Assembly (NCBI GenBank): GCA_024704765.1
Contig: JAKMXF010000210.1
Location: 496,001 to 560,000, forward strand
DNA: 64,000 nt
From: Oopsacas minuta
Taxonomy: Eukaryota > Animalia > Porifera
Reading direction: 5' to 3'
In this document: positions 2,344 to 25,700 of the stretch, piece after piece
How positions within the stretch are numbered: the first letter of the stretch is position 1
Layout: each line of letters begins with the position of its first letter
Translations under genes and position numbers: made by a program
Notes under the pieces: model-generated
The model's input: only the letters and a program-made list of their open reading frames with translations
Told to the model about the DNA's origin: nothing
Databases searched by the model: none

Positions 2344-2649
2344 ATGCTTCATCTGCTAAGATATAATGCTAGAGTATTGCCTAGAATTCCTTTGCTATAC
2401 AACTTACAATCAACTCCCACAGTTACAATATACCAATTTTCAACAGACATTCCTACAGGTGATAACACTAATACTGAAAAAGCAAAGAATAAATGTAGGA
2501 AAGAAACAGCTCGCCCCAATGACGCATCTGTTCTAGATGAAGGGGGCGTACACGTTAATCCTGTTACTGGGGAAAGGGGTGGTCCCAGGGGTCTAGAACC
2601 CACCAGGTATGGGGACTGGGAGAGGAAAGGGAGAGTTAGTGATTTTTAA
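2344..2649 (+). CDS. SDHAF4: Succinate dehydrogenase assembly factor 4 (DUF1674), mitochondrial
   Basis: C-terminal family signature NPVTGERGGPRGLEPTRYGDWERKGRVSDF; basic presequence-like N-terminus. Confidence 0.95.
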   Translation: MLHLLRYNARVLPRIPLLYNLQSTPTVTIYQFSTDIPTGDNTNTEKAKNKCRKETARPNDASVLDEGGVHVNPVTGERGGPRGLEPTRYGDWERKGRVSDF

Positions 2650-2758
2650 TTTTAGAAATCATTTGCAGTTTGTGACGAATACTTCGAACGTTTTCTACTT
2701 TTCCAATGTAATTTGAATACAGATATTATTTTTAGCCTGTGTGTAGTATACACTAGAT

Positions 2759-5154
2759 ATGTCAGATTTATCTATCAAACTTGATTCAAAATCCCTGACT
2801 TCTCATCATATCTCTGAGTTCGAGGACTTAGATGAGTACTACATAGTGAGGAGGGGGCAGGCATTCACACTGACTGTAGAGACAAGCGATACTTCTCTAC
2901 TCCTAGACCAATTCCATCCCAAAGAAATATACTTACAGTATCCACAGAATTCGTCTAATGTTACTGTCCTAATCCCAGCTAAGAATTTCCGCATGACAGT
3001 CAGAAAAGCAACTTCTCTATCCACAACCGTAACACTAGATCCTCGTAGCACTCCTATAGCATCTCCAGCAAAGATATCAATCATTATAGAGCAAGTGAAG
3101 GGACCTGTCCGTAGGAGGAGGAGCTCAACTGGTACCCTACTAACATACATTATTATAGTTATGTAGTTATATGTAGATTTGTTTGTAATAGGAGATGAAT
3201 CTGCTTCTAAACTAGCTGCTATCGAATCTGAAGAGAGAACACTCTCAGTTCTGAGCGATAAAGAAATGGTTGTTTTGTTTAATCCATGGTGCAAAGAAGA
3301 TCTTGTCTACATGGAAGGAGAGGATAGACTGAGAGAGTATGTGTTAAGAGAGAGAGGAAGGATTTGGTGGGGAGGTAAGGCTTCTAGGGCCTGGTATTTT
3401 GGACAATTCGAGCCTCAATCTCTTTTGGCTCTGATTGAAGTAAGTTACATTTTGACTACAGTACATATATATTGTTGTAGTATAAATTCTCATAATAAAT
3501 AGATCATGAAAGAAGTTCAAATGGAAGATAAAACCTCTCCTATTTCGATAGCACGTGCTCTCAGTTACAGAGTTAATGACAGAGTATTAGTTGGGAATTG
3601 GAGTGGAGATTATTCAGGAGGCAAGGCTCCTACTGCTTGGACAGGCTCTGCAATGATTCTGAATCAATTTGTAAAATCAGGTGACATCGTGAAGTACGGT
3701 CAGTGCTGGGTATTCTCTGGTGTATTAACTACACTATGCAGAACAGCTGGTATAGCAGCTCGCTCTGTTACTAACTACGCATCAGCCCATGACTATAAAG
3801 ATACTGATAGGAAAGACTTAGAGATGACCGGTGGATACAATAGAATAGTAGATGTGTTTATTGATGAGAAAGGAAATGTATTGGATGACATGACCAATGA
3901 TTCTACATGGTACTCTCTTATACTTACTATTTGAAGTTAGTTTTATTGTAATCTATATTTCATACAGGAATTTCCATGTTTGGAATGAAGTTTGGATGCA
4001 GAGGCCTGATTTAGCCTCTGGGAGCTATGGAGGTTGGCAAGCTTTGGACTCTACGCCTCAAGAACTGAGTGATGGGAAATACCAGTGTGGACCTTGTCCA
4101 GTATTTGCAATCAAGTCTGGTAAATCAGTAAGATACGATACCATGTTCATATTCGGAGAGGTTAATGCTGATTATGTGCTACAACAGAGGCAAGCTGATT
4201 CTACTTTCAAAGAGGTTAGCCGAGTGTGTTTATTTTTGAAACTGATACTTGTTTTAAACTTACCCCTATTAGATATCAAGAGATATAGCACGGATTGGTA
4301 AGTTCATCAGTACTAAGAAGGTTGGTTCTGGGGGTAGAGAGGATCTAACCCTGGATTACAAGTTTGCAGAAGGATCTATTGAGGAGAGAATTGCTTTTAC
4401 CTCAATTGGTCGTGGAATTGGAGCGGGTACAGCTCCAGGTTTGTATTCTTATTTATTATTTAGGATATTTAATGGGTAATTTAATTATTGTATATCTTTA
4501 GTGAAACCAGACTTGAGTGTGGTATTTGACCTCCAAGATATTCAGGTCGGACAAGATGGTCAAGGAGTATTAAAAGTGGTTTCTAATTCCTCAGAAAATA
4601 GGACATTTTCTGTATCAATTCATGGATATTTGGTTCGTTACAATGGTGTTCGTATCACAAAGATTTTCACAACACAAGCTGAAGGTATTGTGATTGATGC
4701 TGGAACTTCTACTGAATTTAATCTCTCAGTTTTACAAGAGTACTACGAAGGCTGTATATTTGATAAAGTTTTCGTTCAATCCTTTACTTATGTTAAAATT
4801 GCTGAAACTGGCGAAACTTCCGTTAGCATTGATACAGCTAACTTCAAAACTGATCCTCCAATGATAACATTACCTATTTCAGTGAAAGCTGGGGAGTTAT
4901 TTGACATTCAAGTTAAATATACAAACACGCTTAAAAAAGCAACTCTCTCCAATCTCACTTTCGAATTATCTCCCATTCGTGGTGCAACCAAAGGATTTGA
5001 GAAGGTAGTTGCTGAATCTATGGCCCCAGGACAATCTATTGAGGAAGTAATTTCCACAAGCATTGCAAAAGCTGGAGATTATGAACTAGATTTCGATCTT
5101 ACTTGCAATCAACTGGGCTCGAATCCAGTTACATTCGAACTTAAAGTAGTATAA
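2759..5154 (+). CDS. Protein-glutamine gamma-glutamyltransferase (transglutaminase), 6 exons, 702 aa
   Basis: Exons 2759-3131, 3177-3439, 3503-3909, 3968-4214, 4273-4438 and 4502-5154 join through GT-AG introns of 45-63 nt into 2109 nt in frame. Catalytic triad intact: Cys (YGQCWVF), His (NFHVWNE), Asp ([10 protein letters not shown]). N-terminal beta-sandwich (VRRGQAF) and C-terminal barrels are present. Confidence 0.93.
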
Positions 5155-5605: not shown

Positions 5606-8600
5606 TCATGAGTAGGTAAGCTCGATGGTACCCACAGCGTTGCAGATTTTATGTTCAAGATTATCGATGTAACGACATCTACAATAGTCAATAGTTTCCA
5701 CCTGACCAAGTATGCAGTCGCAATATTCGGTATTGTTTGGGAAATTCTTTTCACATTTACATCTTGCTTGTTGATCTACCGAGACAATTGTACACTCTCT
5801 CCCTCCAGGAAAGCATTCACAATTTCGGCACTGAGTTAATTCTTCTCTTGCCCGCACAAGAACCTCACTTGTGAGGGCATCAGTAATTGCGTCCCAGTTA
5901 CCGGTTTCATTTCTTCGAATAACCTTGAGATCCCAAACGTACCCTGTCGCATTTAGGGCGGTCTGTAGGTAGTCATTATGGATTTCCTCTCTTACTGAAT
6001 TATCTACAGTGTTTATAACCTCTGTATTTTCGAGTCTAAAAATCTCCTGAGAGCCTCCTACCCTATAGAAACATGTCTCAGCACTTGACACACCCAAACA
6101 ATCAATGGATGAGCCCCCATCATCTGTAGCTGTGAGAGTAACATCGATGATTTGAATAGGAATTATATTATTCTGTGTGAAAAGGTCCACGTAAAGTGAC
6201 CTACCAAAGTCAACGAAATTATTGAATAGAGAACTTGCAGCCTCAATCTCTTCGAAGCTGTCATAAAAGAAGTCTCTACGTTCATCTGTTACAAGGATGG
6301 CAAATCTTAAAGAATTTGGTCTTATTTGTGCGTATTTTTTCGCGAAATTCGTCGCTGCAAATCCATCTTCACGCTCCCCAATTTTAGGCAACCGCTTTAT
6401 TGTCTTTGTTACATTACTGTCATCGTTCATGTCGATTGTGAAATATACATTATCAGTAGGGCCACCTCTGTCAAGGTTTGGACCAACGAAATATGGGTTC
6501 TCTTTGTCACCTATACTGCCGAATGCGACAGCTGTGTATTGATTTTGATTGATTGTACTGTTTCCAACACAGCTTTCACGAAGTGAGCTCTCAAAACGTG
6601 GCAAGAAAGATCTCAAGAATTCATGTTCTGTATCCATAGATGCAGAAACGTCAATGATTAGTAAAATATCAGCGAAGAAATCTTCACCACAATCAGACTC
6701 GGTTAACAGGGTTTGACTCGCACCACAACATTCTACTGTAATTTCTACTGTACGAATATCTCCTGCACCATCTCTCTCAACACCTCTCTCAACACAGTCA
6801 TTACATGGACATTCAAATTCATATCTGTTTAGTCCAGTTACGACAGCCTGATATTTGTAGATGCAGAGATCTCTGATTGGTACCACGAGTTGATTTGGTC
6901 CACTGACGATTTGATCTGTGCGAATCAATTCAAGATTATTGTTTATTTCTCTGTGCCATTGAATTTCTTGGTCGAGAGAAAATGAATGAGCGAAGAGAGT
7001 GAGTGTTGCCTGTTTTGTTGCTATGTTAGAATCGCAGTTGGAGCATATTGTGCTGGTACTATCTGGATTGTTGTCACAAGAAACGACTGTCTGGACTATT
7101 AGATTGAAGGTATGTATGTCTTCTCCATACCGATTCCTAACAATAGAAGTATACTCTCCTGCACCATTAGATTGGAAGTTATGGATGATTATAGTCGCAG
7201 TATTACCTACATACTCAAAAGAGTAATCTACTCCTTGTATAAGTTCTACTCCTCCATAGAACCATTGGAAACTCCAAGGCCGTGTGCCCTCTCTGACAAT
7301 TCCTGTTATCCTCAGCTCTGAACCTGTCCTAGCAACAAGTGTTTGTCCGAATTGTGCCTGTGTCCCTGTGACTGTCCCTGAGATTGTCTTGTCCCATTTT
7401 GGTAAGATACCAATGGTAGTGAACTGTGTATCATTTCCGAATGCATTTTCTGCGATTAGAACATAGGAGCCCGCTATGTTGTCACCAACTTGTGAGAAAA
7501 CTAGATTATATGGATTTGTTTCAGAGACTGATGCATAGTTAGCTACTATGGATTGTTCAATAGGAATGAAATTCCCATTTACATCAACGTAGTACCAAGA
7601 TGTAGTGACAGGCTGTGTTCCCGCCCTGAGACGTGATCCAATTGTGAACATTGTCACTAGATCACCATCCAGTCCATAATACACTCTCTCTTCCATATTT
7701 CCAAATCCGCCTACATTGACTACCACATTGTCAGTTGTAATTGTGGTATTTCCTGAAGTCCATTCAAGGATTGGTGGTTCACCTCTAATACACGCTGAGC
7801 TTTCTTGACATGGCTGTAGGGTTCCTGACACACATCTGCACTCAACACATGCTTCCCTTTGTCCACATGCCAGACTGCTTCTTACGACAACATTGTTAAC
7901 AAATGCTTTGGTGAATGCATCTGTTTGGGAGCCCATCTTTTCGATGTCCCATGCGCTCCCTCCCCGACTCAAAGCTAACATAACATAGAAAATATCAATA
8001 GCTGACCCTGCTGAATTTTCTTTTACTTTACCTCCAGCTCTTTCTTCATAACCAGGCGGGTCTGATATGACTACTAATGCTTTTATACTACCATCAGTGT
8101 CTTTGTATATACCAAGTGCAGCATTTCCCTCACCATCTTCAAACTGAGCATCAACGATCACGTTTAGGATCACTTCTTCTCTGGCGAGTTCAGCTTCAAT
8201 AAAATCTCTGTCTAGTTCAGGAACAATAATATTACCATCCCGGAAACTCCCACAGTTAGCTCTTGGCCCATTTGTTATGAGTGTTATGTGTCGACACGAT
8301 TGATCTTGAAATTCTGCTGGGTATCTTCGCAGTGCTGAATAAATTGCGGCGTAACCGTCAGATGAAAATCCGGACGCTTCAAATTCGAACCCCACAATTA
8401 ATGGTGTAATTTCTACTGATGTACCACACAGGTCCTGAGGTGATATAGGGAATGATGTCCCATAACAACCCTCAGGTACACGATCATTATCTTGACCGAA
8501 TGTCATCAGACAGTACTGATTTAAACAAAGACTGTTCTCTTGCCCAAAGTTTATCTCAGCCAAGTTTCTTACCAGACGACCTGCAACATCTTTAACATTA

Positions 8601-10882
8601 TTATGGATATCTCCCATTGCACTTGTTTCAGCAACTGCGAATACCATATCTACGCACGAAGCCCGTCTGAAACCACTTATAATCTGTGTCATATTGCACT
8701 CAGTTGGACGACATTGATTTGTAGTATCAAAATCGAGTACTTCTATTTGATCACAGTTGTTAGTGCCATCAGTACATGAGCAGTTTTGACAGCCTACTAC
8801 CTCACAATTTTCGGGGGGAGGCTCATCCCTTATGGGCACATTAGGAATGATTTCATATATTAGGAAAGCTTTGGTGAAAGTTGTCCTGAAAGCTCTCGAT
8901 ACAGGCAGACTCCAAAGAATACCACCAGTAGCTCTGACCATCTCATAATAAGTATCTCTTGTGTTTTGTGTCTGATCACTAGCATCAGGAATTGTAAGTT
9001 GGATACCATCAGGGATGGACATCGTATCGAGAGTGTCATCATCTATCAAGTATAAAATTACATCATTTGGTAAGATGGCAAGAATCCGATCTTTGTCAAT
9101 ACCATAGGATGGATTAACCGTTATATTCAGATGCACAATAGCACTGAGGACGATACTAAATGTGTTCAGTGTTTGTGCCATATTTTGATTCAGTAGAGTT
9201 GGAATTCTAGTACTTGTTGGGTCAGGGGTGGGAGTTAAGTTATCGCGATCTTCGTCAGTTATGAGAACCACCTTACGACATGCAGGGTATATGTACTTAT
9301 ACTGTTGTAGTGCTCTGTAAATAGCTGCATATCCATCTTCCAATCTCCCTGCAGCCAAGAACTGAGATGCATTAACTAGATTTGTCAATTCTTCACTCGT
9401 CCCCCAGTAGTTTAAAAATTGTCCTTTATATGTTATTCCTCCTAAATCCAATATTCTACCAATATGATCTACACCTAGACTCCTATCAGCACCGAATCTG
9501 AGAACTCCATAATAATTGGTGCAAGTATCAGCAGAAACAAAACCGGATGCAGTTAATGCTATGTCGATTTCTTCAGATACCTGAGATAGCCAGATATGTT
9601 CAGGTCCCATTGATGCAGATTCATCGATGACATAGATTAAGTTGGTACACATTGCCGGCACGGCCTCTGTTTCTAGAAAAGTTGGTTCTTCGTTTGGATC
9701 GCACTCATCGAAACAAGGTCTATCGCGGATACATTGAAATGTGTTTCCATCACAGTAAACAAATCGGTCTATTGATGTATCATAGACGATTTGACCCAAT
9801 TCATAATCGCTGCAGTCAGAATTAAATGTAGAATTTAATTCTTTAATTATAATTCTCATCCCAACCGGTCCCTTGCTTCCAGTTTCCCCTTTAACTCCCT
9901 GATTTCCAACTGATCCTACATCCCCTTTATCTCCAGGCACACCCTTACTGCCTTTAGTACCCTTCCTCCCTTGATCCCCATTATCACCTCGACTTCCAAT
10001 TTCCCCATCATCACCTACTTCTCCAGGTGGTCCTGTCCCTGTTGGCCCTTGATCTCCTGGGTCTCCTTTCATTCCTATTGGTCCACCGTCACCTCTTTCG
10101 CCTTCTTCTCCAGGCTCTCCTTTGACGCCAGGTGACCCATCTGCTCCCGGGTCTCCAGCATCTCCCTGCCCACCTTGATCCCCTCGAGCTCCCATGTCTC
10201 CATCATTTCCCTTCTGTCCCCGAGGCCCATCATCTCCAGGAGCACCAACATCTCCATTCACTCCGGGCGGTCCTCGTTCACCATTGGGACCAGGTGCTCC
10301 TTTTTCCCCCTTTACCCCTGTCTCTGGTTTTGGGCATTCCTCAGGGTAACAAATACCAGGTAGTCCTGGCCTTCCCATGGCTCCTTCTTGACCTCTCGAT
10401 CCAGGATAGCCCTTCCCTCCCCTCACACCTCGGCAGCCATCAGGACAGTTTGGAGCTATTTGTAATTCAGTACATGCTGTTGTTTCAATTACTCCCTTGG
10501 TCTCGGCGACTGAGAAGGTGAGAATGCAACAATATTTGGCAGCTTCATTTTCTGTTACGTTGTAGATGCTTAGAGACATCTCAGTGTAACGACGAATGTT
10601 AGGGTATCCGACAACATTAAAACCATCATACTCGAGTCTATTATCGTTCAAATTCCAGTCTATAATAGGATTCTCATCTGGTACAGTACTGACTGGACAC
10701 CTGAGCTCAACTGAAGCTCCAGCACTTACTATAGCATTATCTCCTATGGTCACACGCGGAGTCGATATCCCGATGAGTTTGTATGTTTCTCCATTTCCAG
10801 CTAAGATTTCCCCTGTGTTTGCATTCTGTAGAAAAGCCACCAATACACATATCACCAGAATCCATGAAATTTTCGTTCCCAT
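5606..10882 (-). CDS. Secreted Ig - collagen - VWA - VWA - Ig - Ig - VWA protein, paralogue A (1758 aa, intronless)
   Basis: Signal peptide (ISWILVICVLVAFL), Ig domain (VELRC..W..AKYCC), Gly-X-Y region at 9854-10447, and three VWA-like domains (IYVIDESASM; VFAVAETSAM; LLIIDVSASM), each followed by a CxxCxCxxG-type motif. Two further Ig-like domains; no TM segment. Confidence 0.85.
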   Translation of the reverse strand: MGTKISWILVICVLVAFLQNANTGEILAGNGETYKLIGISTPRVTIGDNAIVSAGASVELRCPVSTVPDENPIIDWNLNDNRLEYDGFNVVGYPNIRRYTEMSLSIYNVTENEAAKYCCILTFSVAETKGVIETTACTELQIAPNCPDGCRGVRGGKGYPGSRGQEGAMGRPGLPGICYPEECPKPETGVKGEKGAPGPNGERGPPGVNGDVGAPGDDGPRGQKGNDGDMGARGDQGGQGDAGDPGADGSPGVKGEPGEEGERGDGGPIGMKGDPGDQGPTGTGPPGEVGDDGEIGSRGDNGDQGRKGTKGSKGVPGDKGDVGSVGNQGVKGETGSKGPVGMRIIIKELNSTFNSDCSDYELGQIVYDTSIDRFVYCDGNTFQCIRDRPCFDECDPNEEPTFLETEAVPAMCTNLIYVIDESASMGPEHIWLSQVSEEIDIALTASGFVSADTCTNYYGVLRFGADRSLGVDHIGRILDLGGITYKGQFLNYWGTSEELTNLVNASQFLAAGRLEDGYAAIYRALQQYKYIYPACRKVVLITDEDRDNLTPTPDPTSTRIPTLLNQNMAQTLNTFSIVLSAIVHLNITVNPSYGIDKDRILAILPNDVILYLIDDDTLDTMSIPDGIQLTIPDASDQTQNTRDTYYEMVRATGGILWSLPVSRAFRTTFTKAFLIYEIIPNVPIRDEPPPENCEVVGCQNCSCTDGTNNCDQIEVLDFDTTNQCRPTECNMTQIISGFRRASCVDMVFAVAETSAMGDIHNNVKDVAGRLVRNLAEINFGQENSLCLNQYCLMTFGQDNDRVPEGCYGTSFPISPQDLCGTSVEITPLIVGFEFEASGFSSDGYAAIYSALRRYPAEFQDQSCRHITLITNGPRANCGSFRDGNIIVPELDRDFIEAELAREEVILNVIVDAQFEDGEGNAALGIYKDTDGSIKALVVISDPPGYEERAGGKVKENSAGSAIDIFYVMLALSRGGSAWDIEKMGSQTDAFTKAFVNNVVVRSSLACGQREACVECRCVSGTLQPCQESSACIRGEPPILEWTSGNTTITTDNVVVNVGGFGNMEERVYYGLDGDLVTMFTIGSRLRAGTQPVTTSWYYVDVNGNFIPIEQSIVANYASVSETNPYNLVFSQVGDNIAGSYVLIAENAFGNDTQFTTIGILPKWDKTISGTVTGTQAQFGQTLVARTGSELRITGIVREGTRPWSFQWFYGGVELIQGVDYSFEYVGNTATIIIHNFQSNGAGEYTSIVRNRYGEDIHTFNLIVQTVVSCDNNPDSTSTICSNCDSNIATKQATLTLFAHSFSLDQEIQWHREINNNLELIRTDQIVSGPNQLVVPIRDLCIYKYQAVVTGLNRYEFECPCNDCVERGVERDGAGDIRTVEITVECCGASQTLLTESDCGEDFFADILLIIDVSASMDTEHEFLRSFLPRFESSLRESCVGNSTINQNQYTAVAFGSIGDKENPYFVGPNLDRGGPTDNVYFTIDMNDDSNVTKTIKRLPKIGEREDGFAATNFAKKYAQIRPNSLRFAILVTDERRDFFYDSFEEIEAASSLFNNFVDFGRSLYVDLFTQNNIIPIQIIDVTLTATDDGGSSIDCLGVSSAETCFYRVGGSQEIFRLENTEVINTVDNSVREEIHNDYLQTALNATGYVWDLKVIRRNETGNWDAITDALTSEVLVRAREELTQCRNCECFPGGRECTIVSVDQQARCKCEKNFPNNTEYCDCILGQVETIDYCRCRYIDNLEHKICNAVGTIELTYS
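7175..7622. repeat. 448-bp near-identical duplicate, copy in paralogue A (partner 24231-24678)
   Basis: Hand alignment at offset 17,056 shows 2 mismatches in 448 bp (7454 G/A; 7573 T/C). Confidence 0.95.
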
Positions 10883-11120: not shown

Positions 11121-11186
11121 TATATAATTTATATGAATAATTTTTATCCATTTTTGTTACTTTATGTTATTCTTAGATCGATAATA

Positions 11187-11516
11187 ATGGCATACTTTTG
11201 CCCTTATTGTGGAAACTTGCTTAATGTTGAAGTACGAGGTACTGATTCAAATAGGTTGGCCTGTATGACGTGTCCACATGTTTATGAAATTTTTCAACAG
11301 ATCGTTATTAAGCGTTACCCGAGATTGAAAGAGGTAGACGACGTGCTCGGCGGTTCTTCAGCCTGGGAAAATGTCGATTCAACGGAAGAAACTTGTCCAA
11401 AATGCAAACACAAGCGAGCTTACTACCTGCAAATACAAACCAGGTCTGCTGATGAGCCTATGACTGTATTTTACAAATGTTGTAACGTTCCATGTGGCCA
11501 TAGATGGAAGGATTAA
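11187..11516 (+). CDS. POLR3K: RNA polymerase III subunit RPC10/C11 (109 aa)
   Basis: [13 protein letters not shown]-terminal zinc ribbon and TFIIS-like C-terminal ribbon ([24 protein letters not shown]). The true start is ATG 11187; the TTG start in the ORF track lies inside the MITE. Confidence 0.96.
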
Positions 11517-11878: not shown

Positions 11879-14341
11879 ATGAATTGGAAGTTATCACATA
11901 CTAATGTGAAGATTGGATGCTTTATCATATCATGTCTCTGTTATATAAATTCTCTGTGGGGAGATTTTTGTTTTGATGATATTTCAGCCATTGTAGAAAA
12001 CAAAGATCTACGTCCAGGAACTCCCTTACTAAACCTATTGCAAAATGATTTCTGGGGTACACCCATGCATATAGAGGGCAGTCACAAGTCTTATAGGCCT
12101 TTAACTATATTTACGTTCAGAATTAATTACTATTTTGACGGGTTGCAACCCATAAGCTATCATATTGTTAATGTCCTATTGCATGGGATAGTGACTTATT
12201 TGTTCACTTCATTCGTTTCAGAAATTTCAGATAATTGTTGTATTGCTCTAATTTCAGGATTGCTTTTTGCAATTCATCCTATTCACACTGAAGCCATTGC
12301 TGGTCTAGTTGGAAGAGCTGAATCTCTCTCGGGAATATTCTTTCTATTAGTTTTATTTATTTACTCAAGAGCAAGTAATCACACTGGTTTGATTTATTGT
12401 ATAGAGATGGTATTATTGTATCTAGCTACGCTCTGTTCAATTTTAAGTAAAGAAGTAGGTATCACTGTGATTGCAATTTGCTGTGTCTACGATGCTCTAT
12501 ACACTGAAAAAATAGTCGTATTAAATTTCTTGTTGCCAACTTCTCCTATAGTCTGGTTTAAGAAATATAGTAGTATTTTGAAACGAATCACTCACCTACT
12601 CATTTTCACGCTTACTATATTATTCCTACGCATTAAGATAAACGGTCCAGGTCTACCGAGTTTTACACCATTAGATAATCCAGCTAATTATTCTCCATTT
12701 CCCACGCGTCAATTATCTTTTCTATATCTTTGTTTTATTAATACAGGGCTACTCTTCTGCCCTTCCTTTTTATGTGCGGACTGGACCATGCAAACAGTAC
12801 CTTTGATAGAATCCCCGTTAGATCCCAGAAATATCCTTACTTTACTCACATTTTCAGGTTACTTTATGCTTGGAATATGGGCCATTTCAGATAATACCTA
12901 CGACAAGAGGTTAGTATTAATGGCTCTGTCTATTATTATATTCCCTTATATACCGGCCTCAAATCTATTCTTCCCGGTAGGATTTGTAATAGCAGAAAGG
13001 ATACTATATCTACCCAGCATGGGGATGTGTTTATTGGTCGCATTGGGAGTAAATAAGTTAATGAAAATTAGAAAAGTTAAATATCTATGTTATCTATTCC
13101 TTTGTATAACCTGCTTATTCTACTGTACGAAAACAATGGTTAGAAACTTGGATTGGTCGAATGATTATTCACTTTTCAAATCGGGAATTAAAATAAATAA
13201 ACATAATGCTAAACTCTACAACAACTTAGGACATGTGTTTGAAAACCGTGAGCAATATCAAGAGGCAGAAGAGCTGTTCCTTAAAGCATCAGGTATCCAA
13301 CCGGACGATACTGGTTCTTGGATTAATCTAGGACGAGTTTTGAAAGCACAAAAACGTTATAACGAATCTGAGCTAGCATTAAAAACTGCCCTGCAGCAAA
13401 TGCCTAATATTACTGAGAAAGGTCAGTCGTTTAGAATTGCTCCTAATTTCTTGAATGTGTATTTTAACTACGCTAATCTGTTATCACAAAATCCTACACG
13501 TTATAAAGAGGCCGAGAATTATTATAAGACAACTCTACGAGTACGTCCTGATATGCCAGAAGCACACATGAACTATGGAAACTTGCTAATTAAAATTGGA
13601 GATTTTGATTCGGCATTGTCGCATTTTCAGATGGCTATTGACAAGAAACCAGATTACGCAGATGCCTATTATAACATGGCTACTACTTACCTTAAGAAGA
13701 AGGATAGTGCTACCGGCGAAAAGAATTTAAGGATAACATTATCTCTAGATCCTAACCACATACATGGGCTAGTTAATCTCGCCAACCTCTTACTCGAATA
13801 TGATACCTTAAAATCTCGTGATGAAGCAATGCTCTTATTCAAAAGAGTATTAGAGATTGATCCCAGCAATGAGCTAGCGTTGTTTAGCCTTGGTCTACTC
13901 TTCTCAGATGATGGCTTACACCAACAGGCAGAGGAAATGTTCTTACAGACAGTCAATGTAAATCCATTACATAAAAGCGCTCTATTCAACCTCGGATTTT
14001 ATGCTCTGACTTTCAAGAATTTTGTAAAGTGTATTGAGTACTTAGGTATACTTGTTGCAAACTATCCAGCCCATTTCCGTGGTATTTTCAATCTAGCGGA
14101 TTGTTATATGCATATTTCTGATAGAGAAAACGCGAAATTATACTATAAATTAACGCTTGAATTAGATCCCAACTTTACACCTGCTCTACACAATTTAGGT
14201 GTAGCATTGGCTCAAGAAAATGATTTTTTGGAAGCTATCGCTCTATTTGAACAAGTTTTGATACTTGAACCAAGTCACCAGAATGCTAAAATATATTTAG
14301 ACCTCTCGAAAAACGAGTTATATGGTAAATCTAAGCATTAG
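11879..14341 (+). CDS. TMTC3: Protein O-mannosyltransferase TMTC3-like (GT-C membrane domain + TPR repeats)
   Basis: FCFDDISAIVENKDL..NDFWGTPM..SHKSYRPL, CADWTMQTVPL and NAKLYNNLGH..QPDD..RIAPNFLNVY match the TMTC3 subfamily. Multiple TPRs; intronless. Confidence 0.9.
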   Translation: MNWKLSHTNVKIGCFIISCLCYINSLWGDFCFDDISAIVENKDLRPGTPLLNLLQNDFWGTPMHIEGSHKSYRPLTIFTFRINYYFDGLQPISYHIVNVLLHGIVTYLFTSFVSEISDNCCIALISGLLFAIHPIHTEAIAGLVGRAESLSGIFFLLVLFIYSRASNHTGLIYCIEMVLLYLATLCSILSKEVGITVIAICCVYDALYTEKIVVLNFLLPTSPIVWFKKYSSILKRITHLLIFTLTILFLRIKINGPGLPSFTPLDNPANYSPFPTRQLSFLYLCFINTGLLFCPSFLCADWTMQTVPLIESPLDPRNILTLLTFSGYFMLGIWAISDNTYDKRLVLMALSIIIFPYIPASNLFFPVGFVIAERILYLPSMGMCLLVALGVNKLMKIRKVKYLCYLFLCITCLFYCTKTMVRNLDWSNDYSLFKSGIKINKHNAKLYNNLGHVFENREQYQEAEELFLKASGIQPDDTGSWINLGRVLKAQKRYNESELALKTALQQMPNITEKGQSFRIAPNFLNVYFNYANLLSQNPTRYKEAENYYKTTLRVRPDMPEAHMNYGNLLIKIGDFDSALSHFQMAIDKKPDYADAYYNMATTYLKKKDSATGEKNLRITLSLDPNHIHGLVNLANLLLEYDTLKSRDEAMLLFKRVLEIDPSNELALFSLGLLFSDDGLHQQAEEMFLQTVNVNPLHKSALFNLGFYALTFKNFVKCIEYLGILVANYPAHFRGIFNLADCYMHISDRENAKLYYKLTLELDPNFTPALHNLGVALAQENDFLEAIALFEQVLILEPSHQNAKIYLDLSKNELYGKSKH

Positions 14342-14937: not shown

Positions 14938-15726
14938 ATGAATTTGAGTTTATTTATCAAGAATGTTTGCAATAAAATCACACTATCATTGGTAACCCCT
15001 ACAGTAAAACTTCCCATTGGATATATGTGTTTATCCCATGATGATACCATAAGAGGGATGCAAGACAATCCTTTCTTTGAGAAATATAAAAAGCAACTTC
15101 ATAAAGTTAAAAACAATTCGAATAACCAAATTCCTCGAAAGATACCTAATCAGCCACGAATTAATCTGAATAAAAATGATACCAAATCTCAGTCGAAACA
15201 ACCTTTGGATTCTATACTAGATATTAGCAAACTCTTGGATAATACCAGTGAAGAGATAGCTGATATTTGGAATAGTTACCATTCAAATTTAGATTGTATA
15301 CATGGTACACTTCCAGCAGACAGTTACACCCTTACATCTACTCAAGGTACTCTTTGTCCTTACTTTATCTACCCCTTACCCTCTGATACAGGGTATAAGT
15401 TCATGTTCCAACAGTTTTCTAATAACCAATTTCATTTCACTGCCCTAGAAGATTACAATTCATTAAAAGAACATGCTCCTGTCTATCTAAGTATGTCCTA
15501 CTACTCAGAGCTTGCTAAGGAGAAAGATATTGTTCTTATGGCTGGAAAGTTTGACCTAGAGAAGATGAAAACGGAAGAAGCACAGTTATTAGCTCATTTT
15601 GTGCAGTTATACTATGGACAAAACAACAAAGAGAGAATTGAACTTATAAGGAGTTTCAATTTTACTCCTAACTTGTTTGATTATAAACAACTTATACAGC
15701 AATTCAAACAACTCACTTTTATGTAA
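14938..15726 (+). CDS. ATPAF1: ATP synthase mitochondrial F1 assembly factor 1 (ATP11 family)
   Basis: NPFFEKY, LDSILDI..IADIWNSYH, PYFIYPLP, FTALEDY, ELAKEKDIVLM and EAQLL..VQLYY motifs. Confidence 0.9.
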   Translation: MNLSLFIKNVCNKITLSLVTPTVKLPIGYMCLSHDDTIRGMQDNPFFEKYKKQLHKVKNNSNNQIPRKIPNQPRINLNKNDTKSQSKQPLDSILDISKLLDNTSEEIADIWNSYHSNLDCIHGTLPADSYTLTSTQGTLCPYFIYPLPSDTGYKFMFQQFSNNQFHFTALEDYNSLKEHAPVYLSMSYYSELAKEKDIVLMAGKFDLEKMKTEEAQLLAHFVQLYYGQNNKERIELIRSFNFTPNLFDYKQLIQQFKQLTFM

Positions 15727-15953: not shown

Positions 15954-18314
15954 ATGGTTGAAAGAGTTGGTCTAATCGGGCGTGGAAAAGATTTCCTTCA
16001 GATCCCACTCGATTCTATTTCTGTTAAAGTTAATATTTATGGAATACTCGCACACTTTGAGGCTTCCCTGACCTATACTAACTCAACTAAAGATCCTATC
16101 GAGGTTGAGTTTAAGCATCCACTTCATAACGAGTCTGTTTTGATTGGAATTGAAGCTGTAATTGACGGCCGAAAGATCAAAGGAATCGTGAAAGAGAAAG
16201 GAGAAGCTAAGACAGAATATGAGGACGCTATTTCCAGTGGTAAGACTGCAGCTCTAGTAGAAGAGAATTCACAAGATATCTTAGGTATCCTCCTTGGTAA
16301 CCTACCTCCTGGTAAGAATGCTACCATCAGTTTACAGCTGTTACAACAGCTGGATGTTGAACAAGATGGTATACATTTACTACTGCCTACAACACTGAAA
16401 CCTAGATATGAACTAGGTGGATCACAAGCACAAGCACCACCGAGTTATACTGCCATGATTGAGACAGTAGTCCCAGCAATTTACAAATTCAGTTTTGAGT
16501 TATTTCTAGTCGGAGAAATCGGAAAATTGAAACAGATTACTTCACCTTCTCACAAAATAGCGGAATTCTATGGTAGTGATGGTCGTAAAGGAATTCAGGT
16601 AACATCTCCTGATCCCTTAAACAATGATCTTGTCGTTTACATTGACTTTGATGATATTAACCCTCTTTCAGCTCTAATAGAACCACCTCTCCCTGAGAGA
16701 GGAGAGAAGCCAGCTCAGCATCCGTATATTGACAACCCTGCTGTGCTATTGACATTTATGCCTAATTCTCATCAAACAGATTTGTGTGGGAATGGAGAGT
16801 TTGTTTTTGTGATAGATCAGAGCGGCAGTATGAGTGGGACTCCTATTATCGAGGCTCGTGAGACCTTAGACATGCTTCTACGTAGTCTCTCTCCTGGCTG
16901 TTACTTCAACATTATTGGATTCGGAACAAGTTATGTGTCACTGTTTCCAGGAGGTAGCGTGGAGTATACCCAGGTTAATCTGGATAAAGCTGTGAAGCAT
17001 GTCTCTACTTTGACAGCTAATTTAGGAGGTACAGAAATCTTACAACCTCTCCAGTATGTGTTCTCCAAAAAATCAATACCAGGCCTGACTAGACAGCTGT
17101 TCCTCCTGACAGATGGGGGAGTATCCAATATAGACGATATTGTTAAGACTGTAGCGGATAATTCGTCTCATACACGTGCATTTACATTCGGGATAGGCTC
17201 AGGTGTGTCTACTGAGCTAGTTAACAAGGTAGCTAAAGCAGGCAAGGGTAAGGCTGTGTTTATATCTAGTAAGGATCGGATGCAGGCTAGGGTAATGGAA
17301 GTGATGGTTACCGCGATGTCTCCCAGCTACACAGATATATCCGTTACTGGTAGCAAAAGCATGGTTGTATACCCCCAATCTATTCCTGTTTTGTTTGAGA
17401 ATGAGCCTTTCGTTGTAGTAGGGTTTTTTAATGAGAAGATTTTTAAGGGAGAGAAGATTACAGCAACACTTAAATACTCTTCTCAAGCTGAAACAAAGAA
17501 AACGACAATTCAATTCACGTTAGCAGACAATGTATCTACTCACTTTCCTAATCTACCTCTGCAATTAGTGCATCAGTTCGGTGTAAGTAAGGCCCTGAGA
17601 GATCTCGAAGGAACTATCTCTTCTAAGGATGAGTGTATAATACTAAGTTGTTATTCTAATATAATGTCTAAGCATACGTCATTTGTAGCTATAGGAGAGG
17701 ACCAGCACCAAATGATTGAAGGCTCTATGAAGATGTATAATGTCAGGATAAATACACTAGCATATGACTCTCCCATGTTAGGTGGTATTCCAATGATGTG
17801 TTCTGCTGCTCCACCTCCTCCTCAGGCATATCATGGACGTTTTTCTAGCGCAGACAGTGGTTCTTTTGGATTTTTGTCTACACCGCCAGTCATGGGTGAG
17901 GATATGGGGTTTGATGATTCTGATGATTCTTATAACGAATCCAATCCTTACGCTTTACTTACTGGCATCCCTGACAGCTCTTGCTCTGTAAAATCATCAT
18001 ATTCGAAACCAACTGGTCATCAGGGTATCATGACGCTACAAAAAGCAGAGGGATATTGGGAATATTCTGGACAACTGGAAAGTCAGTTGGGATGCAAACA
18101 AGCTAAGGACTATTGTCCTAAAGATATTGATGATATCTCAATTTGGATAACTGTCCTCTGTCTGAGTTACTTACAAAAACAGTTCCAAGAGTACAAGAGT
18201 GAATGGTTACTTGTCTACAAGAAGGGAGAGAGATGGGTCAAATCTAAAATGAAGAATTGCAAACTATCTTACGAACAGTTATTCGATTTGGCGACTGACT
18301 TTCTAAAGAGATAG
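15954..18314 (+). CDS. VWA5A: VIT + VWA domain protein (VWA5A-like)
   Basis: N-terminal VIT domain (YTNSTKDPIEVEFKHPL..EAKTEYEDAISSG), VWA with MIDAS (FVIDQSGSMSG, LLTDG, FTFGIG) and a VWA5A-type C-terminal helical region. Confidence 0.85.
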   Translation: MVERVGLIGRGKDFLQIPLDSISVKVNIYGILAHFEASLTYTNSTKDPIEVEFKHPLHNESVLIGIEAVIDGRKIKGIVKEKGEAKTEYEDAISSGKTAALVEENSQDILGILLGNLPPGKNATISLQLLQQLDVEQDGIHLLLPTTLKPRYELGGSQAQAPPSYTAMIETVVPAIYKFSFELFLVGEIGKLKQITSPSHKIAEFYGSDGRKGIQVTSPDPLNNDLVVYIDFDDINPLSALIEPPLPERGEKPAQHPYIDNPAVLLTFMPNSHQTDLCGNGEFVFVIDQSGSMSGTPIIEARETLDMLLRSLSPGCYFNIIGFGTSYVSLFPGGSVEYTQVNLDKAVKHVSTLTANLGGTEILQPLQYVFSKKSIPGLTRQLFLLTDGGVSNIDDIVKTVADNSSHTRAFTFGIGSGVSTELVNKVAKAGKGKAVFISSKDRMQARVMEVMVTAMSPSYTDISVTGSKSMVVYPQSIPVLFENEPFVVVGFFNEKIFKGEKITATLKYSSQAETKKTTIQFTLADNVSTHFPNLPLQLVHQFGVSKALRDLEGTISSKDECIILSCYSNIMSKHTSFVAIGEDQHQMIEGSMKMYNVRINTLAYDSPMLGGIPMMCSAAPPPPQAYHGRFSSADSGSFGFLSTPPVMGEDMGFDDSDDSYNESNPYALLTGIPDSSCSVKSSYSKPTGHQGIMTLQKAEGYWEYSGQLESQLGCKQAKDYCPKDIDDISIWITVLCLSYLQKQFQEYKSEWLLVYKKGERWVKSKMKNCKLSYEQLFDLATDFLKR

Positions 18315-18536
18315 AATATGAATTATATATTTACATGTTCTATATAAATCTATATAGGCAGTGTATTTAGCTTGTCACAATAGACAAGAGTTCTCTACCT
18401 TGCTTGCGTATATATTGTTTGTGAACTCTTTAGAATTTATTAGATGAGACAAACTTTATTATGCATACGTAGTATAATGAAACCGGCTATAAACCGCACC
18501 TGTTTATATATAACTGATAACAGTTTCATAGCTAGA

Positions 18537-19680
18537 ATGAGTTTATGGGTAGATAAGTACAGACCTACTCAGCTGCATAAACTAGACTATCATCATGCGC
18601 TCTCCTCACAACTTAAGAGATTAGTGGACTCTGGAGATTTCCCTCATCTCTTGTTCTTTGGTCCCTCTGGCGCTGGTAAAAAGACTCGTATCATGTGTAC
18701 CTTAAGGGAAATGTATGGTGTAGGAGTAGAGAGATTAAGGATTGAAAATATAAACATTCAAACTCCCTCTAACAAGAAGATAGAATTAACAACGATAAAT
18801 AGCAATCATCATATAGAATTTAACCCGAGTGATGCGGGGATATATGACCGAGTAGTTGTGCAGGAAGTGCTAAAGAATATAGCTCAAATGCACACTTTAG
18901 ACACTGGATCACAGAGAGGATTTAAAGTTGTCGTATTGAACGAGGTGGATAAGTTGACTAGAGAGGCCCAACACTCACTTAGACGGACCATGGAGAAGTA
19001 TTCTAGCAACTGCAGACTTATCTTATGCTGCAATTCAACTGGTAGATATGATAACTATTTTACTTCTTATTATGCTAATTAAATATAATTATATTCTAGG
19101 TAAGGTAATAAGTCCTATTCGTAGCAGATGTCTAGGAATACGTGTACCAGCACCTTCTCACGAGGAGATATCACGTATATTGCATTATGTATGCAAGAAA
19201 GAAGGTGTGGTACTTCCTACCGAACTCTCTGGGAGGATCGCAGAAATGTCTAGAAGGAACCTCAGGCGTGCTCTTTTGATGGTAGAAGCTTGTCGGGTCC
19301 AGCAACACCCTATGTCCCCTGAACAATCCATCCCTCTTCCAGACTGGGAGCAATATATCAAGCAAACAGCTGATCTCATCCTGATGGAACAGAGCCCGAA
19401 ACAGTTGTTGGAAGTTAGAAGTCGGGTGTATGAACTGATGGCTCATGTCATTCCTGCTGACGTCATCATGAAGTATCTCTTGGAGGAACTGGTCAAGAGT
19501 TGTGACGGATCTATGAAGGCTGAGGTCATTACTGCTGCTGCAGAATTTGAACATAGAATTCATTTGGGTTCTAAACCAATATTCCATATCGAAGCCTTCG
19601 TTGCTAAATTCATGAGTATGTATAAGCGTTTCCTTGAAGAAGGTTTAGGAAACTTACAAGATATTGAAATGGATTTTTAG
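18537..19680 (+). CDS. RFC3: Replication factor C subunit 3 (2 exons)
   Basis: Starts MSLWVDKYRP; Walker A GPSGAGKKT; EVDKLTREAQHSLRRTMEKY. The 58-nt intron at 19042-19099 joins CNSTG/KVISPIRSRCL. Confidence 0.96.
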
Positions 19681-19803: not shown

Positions 19804-21360
19804 ATGCGTACTCCATTGAGATTTCTGAGCACCTTATTGAATTATCCTCGATGTATCATTCTTAACAGAAATCGCAGAATAAATAAGTTTCCGCTGAATT
19901 TTCTAATTGCTTATTCACATTCCTATGCCTCCTATCAAGAACTAAAAGATAATCACTCAGCTCTAATCGATAGTTCTAGAATAAGAGATCCTAGAGATAT
20001 AAAACGTCATATCGAGGTAAATAAGAAAAAGTTAATTTGGGAGAGAATTAATGTTTTGTTGGATAAAGACAAACCCTGTTTAGAGTTATCTCCTCTCGCT
20101 GGTGTAGATCTCCCGTATGGAACCGTCCCTAATGCTGGTACCATATCATTGTTAGGTAGTATCTCTGGGGTTATGTGTTTGATCCTTGGTAACGATGCTA
20201 CTTGCAAGGGAGGAACTACGTTTCCTATTAATTTACACAAGACACAGCGTGCATTAAGGATATCAATGCAGAACTTAATCCCTGTTATTCATATCGTTGA
20301 TTCTGGTGGAGCTTTCCTGCCTCTACAAGCTGAAATATTTCCAGATGCTAACCATGGAGGTAGGATATTCTGCAACCAGGCTATAATATCTGCTATGAAA
20401 ATACCTCAAATAGCTTATGTATGTGGATCATGCACAGCTGGAGCTGCTTACATTCCTTCTATGAGTGACGAGGCTGTTATTGTGGAAGATATCGGTACTA
20501 TCTTTCTAGCCGGACCAGCGCTTGTTAAAGCAGCTACTGGCGAGGATACGTCTGCCAATGAATTAGGAGGAGCTATGCTACACTCCACCATAAGTGGAGG
20601 GACTGACTACTATTGTAGAAGCGAGGATGAAGCGTTTTTGTTGATACAGAAATTAGTTTGTAACTTTAATTTGAGTAGAGCCGATGAGGTAGAATATAGC
20701 AATGCAATAGATCCTACAGTTTGTGTTAAGTCAGTTATGGAGCATTATATTAAATCTGAATACTCTCAGATTCCAATGAAAGATCTGATAGTTAGTTTAG
20801 TTGATAAGAGTGATATGATAGAGTTTAAGAGTGAGTATGGGAAGCAAATAATCACTAGCTTCGCATCTATACAAAATAACACTGTTGGTATAATAGCTAA
20901 TAACGGCTCGATAGGCAGTACTGAAGCTCTGAAAGCTACACACTTTGTGCAACTTTGCAATCAACGTAATATCCCGCTCCTATTTATAGTTAACCTCCCT
21001 CCTCGTGTATCTACTCGTTCCCATAACATCAAGGAACAGTCTGGTTTAATTCAGTCTATTTCTCAGGCTAGCGTACCTATGATAACCCTCATAGTTGGCG
21101 AGTCTTCATACCCCGAAGCTTATACCATGTGCAGTCGTGCTTTCGAACCTAACTTCCTATTTGTTTGGCCAACAGCTAAGCACTCTTTTCAAGACGGTAC
21201 TCATAAGGATGCTTACTACGGTTCTGCTAGGCTGTGGGATGATGGAGTTATACTACCTGAAGACACCAGGAGGGTATTGGCACAATCTTTGAGATTCTCA
21301 CAAGTTTATAACAACAAAGATAAAAGCAAAAATTTACAAAATAAATATATTCGAATGTGA
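19804..21360 (+). CDS. Methylcrotonoyl-CoA carboxylase beta-like carboxyltransferase with a divergent C-terminal half
   Basis: N-terminal half carries DATCKGG, DSGGAFLPLQAEIFPD, GSCTAGAAY and IFLAGPALVKAATGE. The end motif AYYGSARLWDDGVILPEDTR is kept, but the intervening C-half motifs are degenerate. Confidence 0.8.
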   Translation: MRTPLRFLSTLLNYPRCIILNRNRRINKFPLNFLIAYSHSYASYQELKDNHSALIDSSRIRDPRDIKRHIEVNKKKLIWERINVLLDKDKPCLELSPLAGVDLPYGTVPNAGTISLLGSISGVMCLILGNDATCKGGTTFPINLHKTQRALRISMQNLIPVIHIVDSGGAFLPLQAEIFPDANHGGRIFCNQAIISAMKIPQIAYVCGSCTAGAAYIPSMSDEAVIVEDIGTIFLAGPALVKAATGEDTSANELGGAMLHSTISGGTDYYCRSEDEAFLLIQKLVCNFNLSRADEVEYSNAIDPTVCVKSVMEHYIKSEYSQIPMKDLIVSLVDKSDMIEFKSEYGKQIITSFASIQNNTVGIIANNGSIGSTEALKATHFVQLCNQRNIPLLFIVNLPPRVSTRSHNIKEQSGLIQSISQASVPMITLIVGESSYPEAYTMCSRAFEPNFLFVWPTAKHSFQDGTHKDAYYGSARLWDDGVILPEDTRRVLAQSLRFSQVYNNKDKSKNLQNKYIRM

Positions 21361-21506: not shown

Positions 21507-22355
21507 ATGGCATCTTCATCAAAAGAGTTAGCGATAGACTCAATCATCCTACTTAACGACGGTGTTAAGATACCCACTTTTGGATTAGGAGTGTATCAAT
21601 CTCACCCAGGTGATGAAACTTATGAGGCAGTCCTGCATGCAATTAAAACTGGTTACTTATGTATTGACACAGCTGCTTTATATAAAAATGAAAAGGATGT
21701 TGGGAGAGCTATAAGGGATTCTAAGGTAACAAGAGAGAATATCTTCATAACCACTAAACTGTGGACAAACAAACACGGAACTAAAACTATTGAAGGTTTC
21801 CATGAGAGTCTGAAACAGCTAGACTTGAAGTATATTGATTTATATCTGATGCATTCTCCGAGGGGAGGTAATCTTGTTGAGACATGGCAATCTATGTTGA
21901 ATCTGAAATCTCAAGGGTTAGTGCGATCTATCGGAGTCTCAAACTTTGGCATTCACCATTTAGAGGAATTAAAACGACATTTTCCAAATTTTCCACCATC
22001 TGTGAACCAGATAGAAATTTCTCCCTACAGCACGAGAAAGGAATTAGTGGAATATTGTAAAAATAATGATATTCTAGTGCAGGCTTACTCTCCTCTCACT
22101 AAGGGAATTAAGTTGAATGATTCTGCATTGGTTGCCATAGCTAAAAAATATTCAAAAACTACAGCTCAAATTCTAATTCGATGGTCATTACAGCGAGGTT
22201 ATCAGGTGATACCAAAATCTGTGAAGAAGATAAGGATCGAAGAGAATGCGCAAATATTTGATTTCTCTATCACAGAAGATGATATGATTGAGTTAGATAG
22301 CTACAATATTAACCTTGTGACAGGTTGGGATCCAACCAATGATCCTTTGATGTAG
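21507..22355 (+). CDS. Aldo-keto reductase (AKR1/AKR5-like)
   Basis: Catalytic tetrad D (IDTA), Y (ALY), K (TTKLW), H (LMHSP); IGVSNF, QAYSPL and IPKS motifs. Confidence 0.93.
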   Translation: MASSSKELAIDSIILLNDGVKIPTFGLGVYQSHPGDETYEAVLHAIKTGYLCIDTAALYKNEKDVGRAIRDSKVTRENIFITTKLWTNKHGTKTIEGFHESLKQLDLKYIDLYLMHSPRGGNLVETWQSMLNLKSQGLVRSIGVSNFGIHHLEELKRHFPNFPPSVNQIEISPYSTRKELVEYCKNNDILVQAYSPLTKGIKLNDSALVAIAKKYSKTTAQILIRWSLQRGYQVIPKSVKKIRIEENAQIFDFSITEDDMIELDSYNINLVTGWDPTNDPLM

Positions 22356-22760: not shown

Positions 22761-25700
22761 TTAACTTGTAATTAATTGGCAAGGTTCTCCTGTATTTCTG
22801 GATAGATCTACGTTGAGACATTCACAATTTCCTGCTCCGTGTAACTGTTCACATTTACATAGTTCTTCTTCTGTAGAGGTAAGTTTCAAGGGTAAGCATT
22901 TAACATTACCTCCATAGAAACACCTACAGGTTTCACAGGTACCAGCTCTTATCCTTGTTACCACACTGCTGATAATGGTGTCACTAATTGCTTGCCTTTC
23001 CTCAGGGCCTCCGTTTATAATCGCATTTATATCCCATACGAATCCTCCAGCGTTTAACGAGGGTACAACAAAATCTTTGTGGATTTCCTCCATGTCTTCA
23101 TTACCTACCACGTTATTGACAATACTACCTCTTATCCTGTCTACACTAGTATCATTCCTTTGAGAATAGCACTGTAATAGATTAGAGGCTCCTATACAGT
23201 TATACGTGTCGTTCTGCTTTGTGTTTGCTGTGAGATTAGTGTTAACCAATAGAAGAGGGTGTAGTTCACGGATTGGATTATTATCTTTCAATGCCTCAGT
23301 GAACAAGGTTCTACCCTTATCTCCAAAGTTCTGAATTTGAAAATACGATTTCCCCGCCAAATCTACCTGAGAGTAGATACTCATGTCACTTTTCTTGTTT
23401 GTGCTCAAGATAAGAATTCGATTGTTTTTTGGCCTAACACGTTCGTTATTCAATGTCAATTTTACAGCTCCGTATGCTCCTCTACCCCCTATGTCTGTAG
23501 CTAAGCCAGTTACTTCTTCATGAAGTTTATCCAAGTTAGTGGTATTGTTTGGTGAAAATGTGAAATGATCTTCTCGAATAATTTCAGGTTCCATTTCGTT
23601 GATACTCATTCTTGTAGCTGTGTACTCGTTTCTCTCTTCTCCAATTCCAATACATACTTTGTTTAGTTGTTCTTCTAGATCCGGCAGGAGAATCTTAAAT
23701 ATGAAATCATTCACAGGTTTCATTTCAGTTGTTACATCTAGTACCAACATCACATTTACACCAGGTTCATTACCAGCGTTACAAGATTGGACCCAGACAT
23801 TTTCTTCTGTGCAACCAGCGATTTCTTTGCCATTCTTGAAACAGCTATTGACTGGACAATTGAACTTGATTGTATTATAGTAAGGTACGTCTACCTCGTA
23901 GTTATATTTACAAAATTCTGCGTAATTTAATGTTACATAGTTAGGTCCTAATTCGAGCGCTTTATTAGCGTATTCTTGTCTTGGTTCTGAATCATCTTGC
24001 TTGTACCAGGTCAGGTTCATGTCTGTCCTACCATTATGCATGTAAAATACTAATATTACTTCATCTGTAACGTTATTGTATGAACAAGAAGAACACATGG
24101 TTACGGTATCGGCAAGAATGTTGTCACATGAAATAGTTGTTTGGACTATCAGATTGAAAAAATGATTATCTTTCCTAAAACTATTGCCGCTACTTATAGT
24201 AACTGTGTATGATCCTGATAGCTGAGGGCCGAAGTTATGGATGATTATAGTCGCAGTATTACCTACATACTCAAAAGAGTAATCTACTCCTTGTATAAGT
24301 TCTACTCCTCCATAGAACCATTGGAAACTCCAAGGCCGTGTGCCCTCTCTGACAATTCCTGTTATCCTCAGCTCTGAACCTGTCCTAGCAACAAGTGTTT
24401 GTCCGAATTGTGCCTGTGTCCCTGTGACTGTCCCTGAGATTGTCTTGTCCCATTTTGGTAAGATACCAATGGTAGTGAACTGTGTATCATTTCCGAATGC
24501 ATTTTCTGCAATTAGAACATAGGAGCCCGCTATGTTGTCACCAACTTGTGAGAAAACTAGATTATATGGATTTGTTTCAGAGACTGATGCATAGTTAGCT
24601 ACTATGGATTGTTCAATAGGAATGAAATCCCCATTTACATCAACGTAGTACCAAGATGTAGTGACAGGCTGTGTTCCCTCTGTCAGGCGTGAACTTATAG
24701 TGAAAGTTGACACCAGATCACCATCCAGTCCATAATATACTGTTACTTCATTAGGGCCGTATCCCCCTACAAGCGCTAGTATATCGTCATCTGTAATTGT
24801 GATTATACCAGAGCTAGAGGTAAATGCTAGAGTTGGTGGCAAACCAGGAACAGCACAAACCTCACTCTCTTCACATCGCTGTAGTTCTCCTCCAATGCAC
24901 TTACACTCTACACAAGCTCTAGTTTGTCCACAAGACTCACTGCTCTTAATTACAACTGCCTTGACGAATGCTCGCGTGAAAAGATCTGTTTGTTCATCAC
25001 CCATAGCCCTTATGTTCCATGCACTTCCATTCAGCCCAATTGCTAGATTAATATAGTTCTGTTGGATATTCTCTCCAGCTTCCTTGACTTTACCTCCAGA
25101 CATGAGTTCGTACCCCAGGACTGCACTACTGTTGGGTACAACTGCTGTAATACTCCCGTCTATTTCTTGAAATATACCGATTGCTTCATTACCATTCTCA
25201 TCCTGAAATGTAGCATTGACGATAACATTGAGAACAATGTTAGCTCTTTGGAGGTCAGCCATGATTTCGTGTGTGTCTAGTTGTGGAATGATAGATTCTC
25301 CATCAGTGTGAGATCCACAATCGTATCTCTGTGTATCTGTGATGAGTGTTATGTGACGACAAGATTGTGATTGGAAATTGATGCTGTATGTCTGTAGTGC
25401 TGTGTGTATTGCTGCGTAACCATCAGCTTGTTGTCCTGTGGCTGTTAAGTTTAATCCAACAATAAGTGGAGCTAATTGAGATGAAGGTGCACATAACTTG
25501 TTCCCACGTGGGATAGGAAATGGATATGAGTAACAACGATCACTGATCCTATCATTATCCGCTCCGTATCCCATAATACAGTACTTGTTTGGACAGATAC
25601 TATTCTCCTGTCCAAAGTTGATCTTTGCTAGATTAGTAGGTAGTCTTATGGCTACATCTTTGATAGCAATATGTGCTGCTTGCATTGTATCCGTTTCTGC

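Follow-up and report, generated by a model that had tools for sequence, protein, structure and literature searches.

A near-identical tract in two old collagen-Ig-VWA paralogues of the sponge Oopsacas minuta points to recent gene conversion

The window analysed here, a 64-kb stretch of the Oopsacas minuta genome, raises the question of how two long-separated paralogues can carry a segment of some 450 bp that is almost the same in both. The paralogues are collagen-Ig-VWA genes, each a single open reading frame (ORF) on the minus strand: gene A (positions 5606 to 10882; 1758 aa), recognized from the ORF list and from Pfam matches to Collagen, I-set, Ig_3, and, weakly, VWA, and gene B (positions 22761 to 27938; 1725 aa), which has the same architecture in the ORF list and Pfam. 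Alignment places the shared tract at positions 7175 to 7622 in gene A (codons 1087 to 1236) and 24231 to 24678 in gene B. An earlier note, made from the sequence alone, had read it as the result of a recent ectopic conversion between paralogues of long standing. Our analysis supports this reading through the silent sites, a runs test, and a conflict between trees: very probably, the Oopsacas lineage underwent a recent interlocus (ectopic) gene conversion of the non-crossover kind, covering approximately 450 bp, between paralogues that lie 17 kb apart in the same orientation.

Both genes encode an N-terminal Ig domain, a collagen triple-helix region, VWA-like regions (weak matches), and a tandem of Ig domains, Ig1-Ig2. 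In the tandem region, Pfam I-set matches aa 1180 to 1263 (E = 4e-11) and, weakly, aa 1088 to 1153. An AlphaFold model of aa 1030 to 1270, built from a 15-sequence family alignment (mean pLDDT, 84.6), contains two strand-rich domains at about aa 1037 to 1166 (Ig1) and 1181 to 1263 (Ig2); the linker between them (about aa 1169 to 1179) is modelled with low confidence (pLDDT below 50). The best PDB matches of this model in Foldseek are the Ig tandems of titin, NCAM2, and contactin(s) (E of about 1e-13). On this Pfam/AlphaFold map, the tract (aa 1087 to 1236) covers the C-terminal part of Ig1 from mid-domain onward, the linker, and the first two thirds of Ig2, stopping before the last two Ig2 strands. 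Thus, it does span the Ig-Ig junction, as the earlier note had claimed, and both of its ends lie within domains. Because the ends fall inside Ig1 and Ig2 and not at their borders, a mechanical event fits better than selection for a module. Identical Ig-Ig segments might conceivably serve a symmetric A-B interface, as the same note had suggested, but here too the mechanical event is the better fit. As a separate observation, the 1725-aa ORF of gene B is intact, but the large protein collection searched here yielded a 100% identical protein for gene A (P0001) and none for gene B; gene B may be missing or split in public annotation.

The two tract copies align gap-free, with 2 mismatches over 448 bases, a count that pairwise alignment and a codon-level check both reproduced. 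One difference is silent (7454/24510; ATC versus ATT, Ile1143), and the other is a replacement in codon 1104 (7573/24629; AAT for Asn in gene A, GAT for Asp in gene B). DNA identity between A and B is 99.6% in the tract versus 53.4% in the rest; protein identity without the tract is 47%, and the whole codon alignment gives 47.5% for protein and 57.5% for DNA. The contrast extends to silent sites. By the Nei-Gojobori method, the tract has a dS of 0.009 and a dN of 0.006, and the flanking segments have dS values from 1.4 to saturated and dN values of 0.43 to 0.80; third-position identity is 1.00 in the tract and 0.2 to 0.55 elsewhere. The three longest runs of exact identity in the A/B codon alignment (5088 nt) measure 279, 118, and 49 nt, whereas the longest run under 10,000 column permutations, in a Sawyer-type runs test, is 28. 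The near-identity of the tract (one silent change and one Asn/Asp change), the clear divergence of its flanks, and the homogenization of silent sites, all of which the earlier note had read from the sequence alone, are therefore confirmed, and the comparison of dS by segment and the runs test both favor conversion.

In the 61.5-Mb assembly (61,460,524 bases in 365 contigs), there are only two copies of the tract, and genes A and B are the only family members. The tract copies are direct repeats 17,056 bp apart. A scan for inverted repeats at the tract ends returned only matches of 12 to 13 nt, likely due to chance, and no GC3 shift pointing to biased conversion was found in the tract (0.34 versus 0.32 to 0.33).

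Relatives of the two genes were collected by word-index protein searches from glass-sponge ENA assemblies (contigs of 0.46 to 1.4 Mb) and were compared at the protein level, on automatic gene models. They comprise 12 A-type, 4 B-type, and 5 hybrid proteins. Maximum-likelihood protein trees were constructed for three segments, namely, the N flank (aa 421 to 1030), the tract, and the C flank (aa 1262 to 1740). In both flank trees, Oopsacas A groups with the 12 A-type proteins and Oopsacas B groups with the B-types, with a split support of 100/100, which indicates that these sponges diverged only after the A/B duplication. In the tract tree, Oopsacas A and B are instead sisters (support, 98/96). 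Furthermore, the A-type proteins of the relatives are only about 59 to 82% identical to Oopsacas in the tract, which speaks for recent homogenization and not for conservation since the duplication. The conflict between the flank trees and the tract tree thus indicates that paralogues were converted within the Oopsacas lineage. The four B-type models of the relatives each lack one internal Ig domain: P0011 and P0012 miss aa ~1034 to 1160, and P0013 and P0023 miss aa ~1157 to 1380. Either the domain has really been lost or the annotation has a gap here, exactly around the exchange region.

The direction of the exchange was read from 24 diagnostic tract sites, at which A-type and B-type relatives have no residue in common, against B-type references that are few, that each lack half of the tract, and that may themselves have been converted. 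In the Ig2 half, both Oopsacas genes have the A-type residue at 13 of 15 diagnostic sites, and gene B thus carries A-type residues through Ig2. At three early Ig1 sites (1094, 1095, and 1110), both Oopsacas genes are B-type. At the sole amino acid difference in the tract, each gene has the residue of its own type (Asn for A, Asp for B). On the basis of these residues, gene A is likely the donor and gene B the overwritten copy, at least for the Ig2 part. The combination of A-type sites in Ig2 with B-type sites in Ig1 makes the shared tract a mosaic, which points to repeated exchange over time (for example, an earlier event in the opposite direction) or to patchy heteroduplex repair.

The present state of the locus is that of a non-crossover: gene A keeps A-type flanks and gene B keeps B-type flanks on both sides of the tract, and the intervening genes are retained. 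Conversion would have copied about 450 bp of one collagen-Ig-VWA gene onto the other, erasing a DNA divergence of approximately 45% over codons 1087 to 1236. Presumably, a break was repaired by strand invasion into the paralogue, with correction of the resulting heteroduplex. The homogenized patch would then supply perfect homology for a next event, and the diverged flanks would keep the tract from extending. The region looks like an island where exchange has long persisted.

Seven genes, all intact and on the plus strand, lie between A and B. POLR3K, encoding the Pol III subunit RPC10/RPC11 (11184 to 11516), is recognized by the Pfam domains Zn_ribbon_TFIIS and Zn_ribbon_RPB9 and has human RPC10 as its best PDB sequence match (E = 2e-49); it is single-copy, the next match in the genome being just 40% identical. 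The gene for an RFC3-type clamp-loader subunit (18444 to 19680) matches Pfam Rad17/AAA and RFC_C (“Replication factor C subunit 3, C-terminal domain”), and its C-terminal part has one match in the genome, i.e., it is single-copy in the assembly. This gene consists of two overlapping ORFs in different frames (18444 to 19082 and 19048 to 19680) and probably contains one very short intron, while the adjacent 5-kb collagen genes have none. The other five genes, identified by domain search, encode a TMTC-type O-mannosyltransferase with TPR repeats (11879 to 14341), the F1-ATPase assembly factor ATP11 (14938 to 15726), an inter-alpha-trypsin-inhibitor-like VIT-VWA protein (15954 to 18314), a carboxyltransferase-domain protein of the acyl-CoA carboxylase beta type (19804 to 21360), and an aldo-keto reductase (21507 to 22355). 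The earlier note had placed POLR3K and RFC3 between direct-repeat copies, and domain search, PDB match, and genome search agree with it. A crossover in the tract would delete or duplicate all seven intervening genes, and it is reasonable to expect selection against the products.

Other glass sponges contain traces of similar exchanges. In one related assembly, an A-type protein (P0002) and a B-type protein (P0013) are identical at 38 of 40 positions over aa 1116 to 1156 and at 22 of 40 positions just upstream. Over the same residues, P0013 matches its own A-type protein at 38 of 40 positions and the B-type P0023 of another contig at 32 of 40, whereas elsewhere these two B-types are 87 to 93% identical. 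Judged from the protein models, this patch is best read as an independently homogenized A/B patch, in the Ig1 region as in Oopsacas. The five hybrid proteins (P0006, P0008, P0010, P0018, and P0020) are B-like up to about residue 1060 to 1075 and then A-like to the C terminus. They occur in three groups of contigs, and their halves are near-identical to the B-type or A-type gene on their own contig. The switch point coincides with VYYGLDGDL or lies immediately before it; the same motif carries a second, shorter patch of identity in Oopsacas. The hybrids may be products of unequal crossover or of long conversion. The earlier note had expected only non-crossover outcomes to persist, but the hybrids suggest that larger exchanges at this spot have survived, at least where added copies exist. 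No hybrid gene is present in the Oopsacas assembly.

We also considered whether the hybrids, which are known as automatic protein models, might be chimeras of gene modelling. We consider this unlikely because their A-type halves differ at scattered sites from every A-type model retrieved from their own contig, which points to separate loci. Pairs of A-type proteins occur on one contig (P0004/P0017, P0007/P0019, and P0005/P0021), and the paired proteins are themselves mosaics, with stretches of 100% identity and single blocks of 60 to 120 aa at 65 to 72% (e.g., aa 781 to 900 in P0007 versus P0019). In those glass-sponge assemblies, the family is expanded and still exchanging segments; Oopsacas has A and B only.

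The shorter patch in Oopsacas, recovered by pairwise alignment, comprises 23 identical bp at 7659 to 7681 in gene A and 24715 to 24737 in gene B (minus strand), over the motif YYGLDGD, with 36 bp of diverged DNA between it and the main tract. The motif is invariant in most family members. For a motif whose residues are the same in both genes, the codons would also be the same with a probability of about 2e-3, and the gene contains 7 comparable conserved motifs. The second patch reported in the earlier note therefore exists at its full 23 bp, but it is weaker evidence than that note had taken it for; taken alone, it is suggestive and only modestly above expectation. A broader reading would make Ig1-Ig2 a long-lived exchange hotspot anchored at VYYGLDGDL and reused independently in several hexactinellid lineages (through short conversions in Oopsacas itself as well as in one relative, and through hybrid genes elsewhere), perhaps kept because A and B chains need matching Ig modules to assemble. 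We consider this extended reading improbable.

Returning to the conversion in Oopsacas, a first alternative is that assembly or polishing wrote the sequence of one copy into both places. The published genome (365 scaffolds, ~61 Mb, 36% G+C) is a SPAdes hybrid assembly (k up to 99) of Illumina and corrected PacBio reads that was subsequently processed with SSPACE, Pilon, and GapFiller, and the DNA of each library came from different individuals (PMC10280926). Bubble removal in SPAdes or Pilon polishing with multi-mapped reads could erase a few true differences in a tract that was already similar. Moreover, gene B is absent from the protein collection, as described above, and a 301-aa query comprising its tract plus flanks found only two fragments, 65% and 53% identical, which are hence not Oopsacas's own. 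However, graph collapse or mis-mapped polishing requires near-identity over the length of a read or k-mer and cannot turn ~53% into 99.6%. Each copy is flanked on both sides by sequence of the right type, arguing against a swap in silico; two copy-specific differences survive in the tract, one of them in its type-specific state; no gaps are present, nor any N runs in the 64-kb window; and the separate assembly of a related sponge has an A/B patch in the same domain. Even if such an artefact were real, the underlying similarity of A and B would still require conversion. We therefore regard this explanation as very unlikely. If polishing did remove true differences, the event may be somewhat older than the 0.4% divergence implies.

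Two reciprocal exchanges, either as a double crossover or as two successive crossovers of which the first was unequal, could also replace the single conversion. The B-front/A-rear hybrids of the relatives do imply that larger exchanges occur in this family, and the Oopsacas tract mixes A-type with B-type sites. The end state would be the same as that of a conversion, but two rare events within 450 bp are less parsimonious than one, the intermediates would delete or duplicate seven genes, two of which are single-copy core genes, and Oopsacas has only two family members; the likelihood of this course of events is accordingly very low. Least probable of all, and hardly credible, is extreme purifying selection at the DNA level since the duplication (for instance, on an embedded RNA gene, an antisense gene, or a regulatory element), which would account for the identical silent sites and the sharp tract ends but is contradicted by the 18 to 41% of tract residues that differ in relatives, by the grouping of tract copies by species in the tract tree, by the lack of an Rfam match at 6900 to 7900 (both strands, E up to 1), and by the lack of an opposite-strand ORF of at least 90 aa within the tract in the ORF list.

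Interlocus gene conversion is a textbook process, and non-allelic conversion between linked paralogues is known from the human gamma-globin, RHD/RHCE, CYP21A2/CYP21A1P, and opsin genes. The Oopsacas pair resembles these in having a short near-identical tract that includes silent sites, in diverged tandem paralogues, with conflicting trees for tract and flanks and with both loci kept. It differs from them in its host, a hexactinellid sponge, and in the far greater age of its flanks (saturated silent sites and less than half of the residues shared), which makes the contrast unusually sharp. The hybrids of the relatives recall hemoglobin Lepore and anti-Lepore, hybrid genes that arose by unequal crossing-over: the B-front/A-rear genes are joined at a conserved motif that adjoins the position of the Oopsacas tract. 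Unlike in the Lepore case, the hybrids here are known from automatic protein models alone, and Oopsacas itself has none.

A literature search returned no report of this locus, of this collagen family, or of gene conversion in sponges. The Oopsacas conversion is a clean but ordinary example of its class and adds no new mechanism or kind of system. For an early-branching animal, the tract should nevertheless help in gauging how long conversion tracts are and how much homology they require. Phylogenies of sponge collagens and studies of their domain evolution should treat Ig1-Ig2 with caution, since this region does not carry the gene's own history.

Two further features lie elsewhere in the window. 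A 660-aa ORF at positions 32 to 2014 resembles a RIM-binding protein, with a RIMBP2-like Ig domain and three SH3 domains, although the animal lacks neurons. Positions 2344 to 5154 (plus strand), just downstream of gene A, contain several short ORFs among which a transglutaminase core and Ig-like pieces of the C terminus are distributed, an arrangement that we read as either a multi-exon or a decayed transglutaminase gene.
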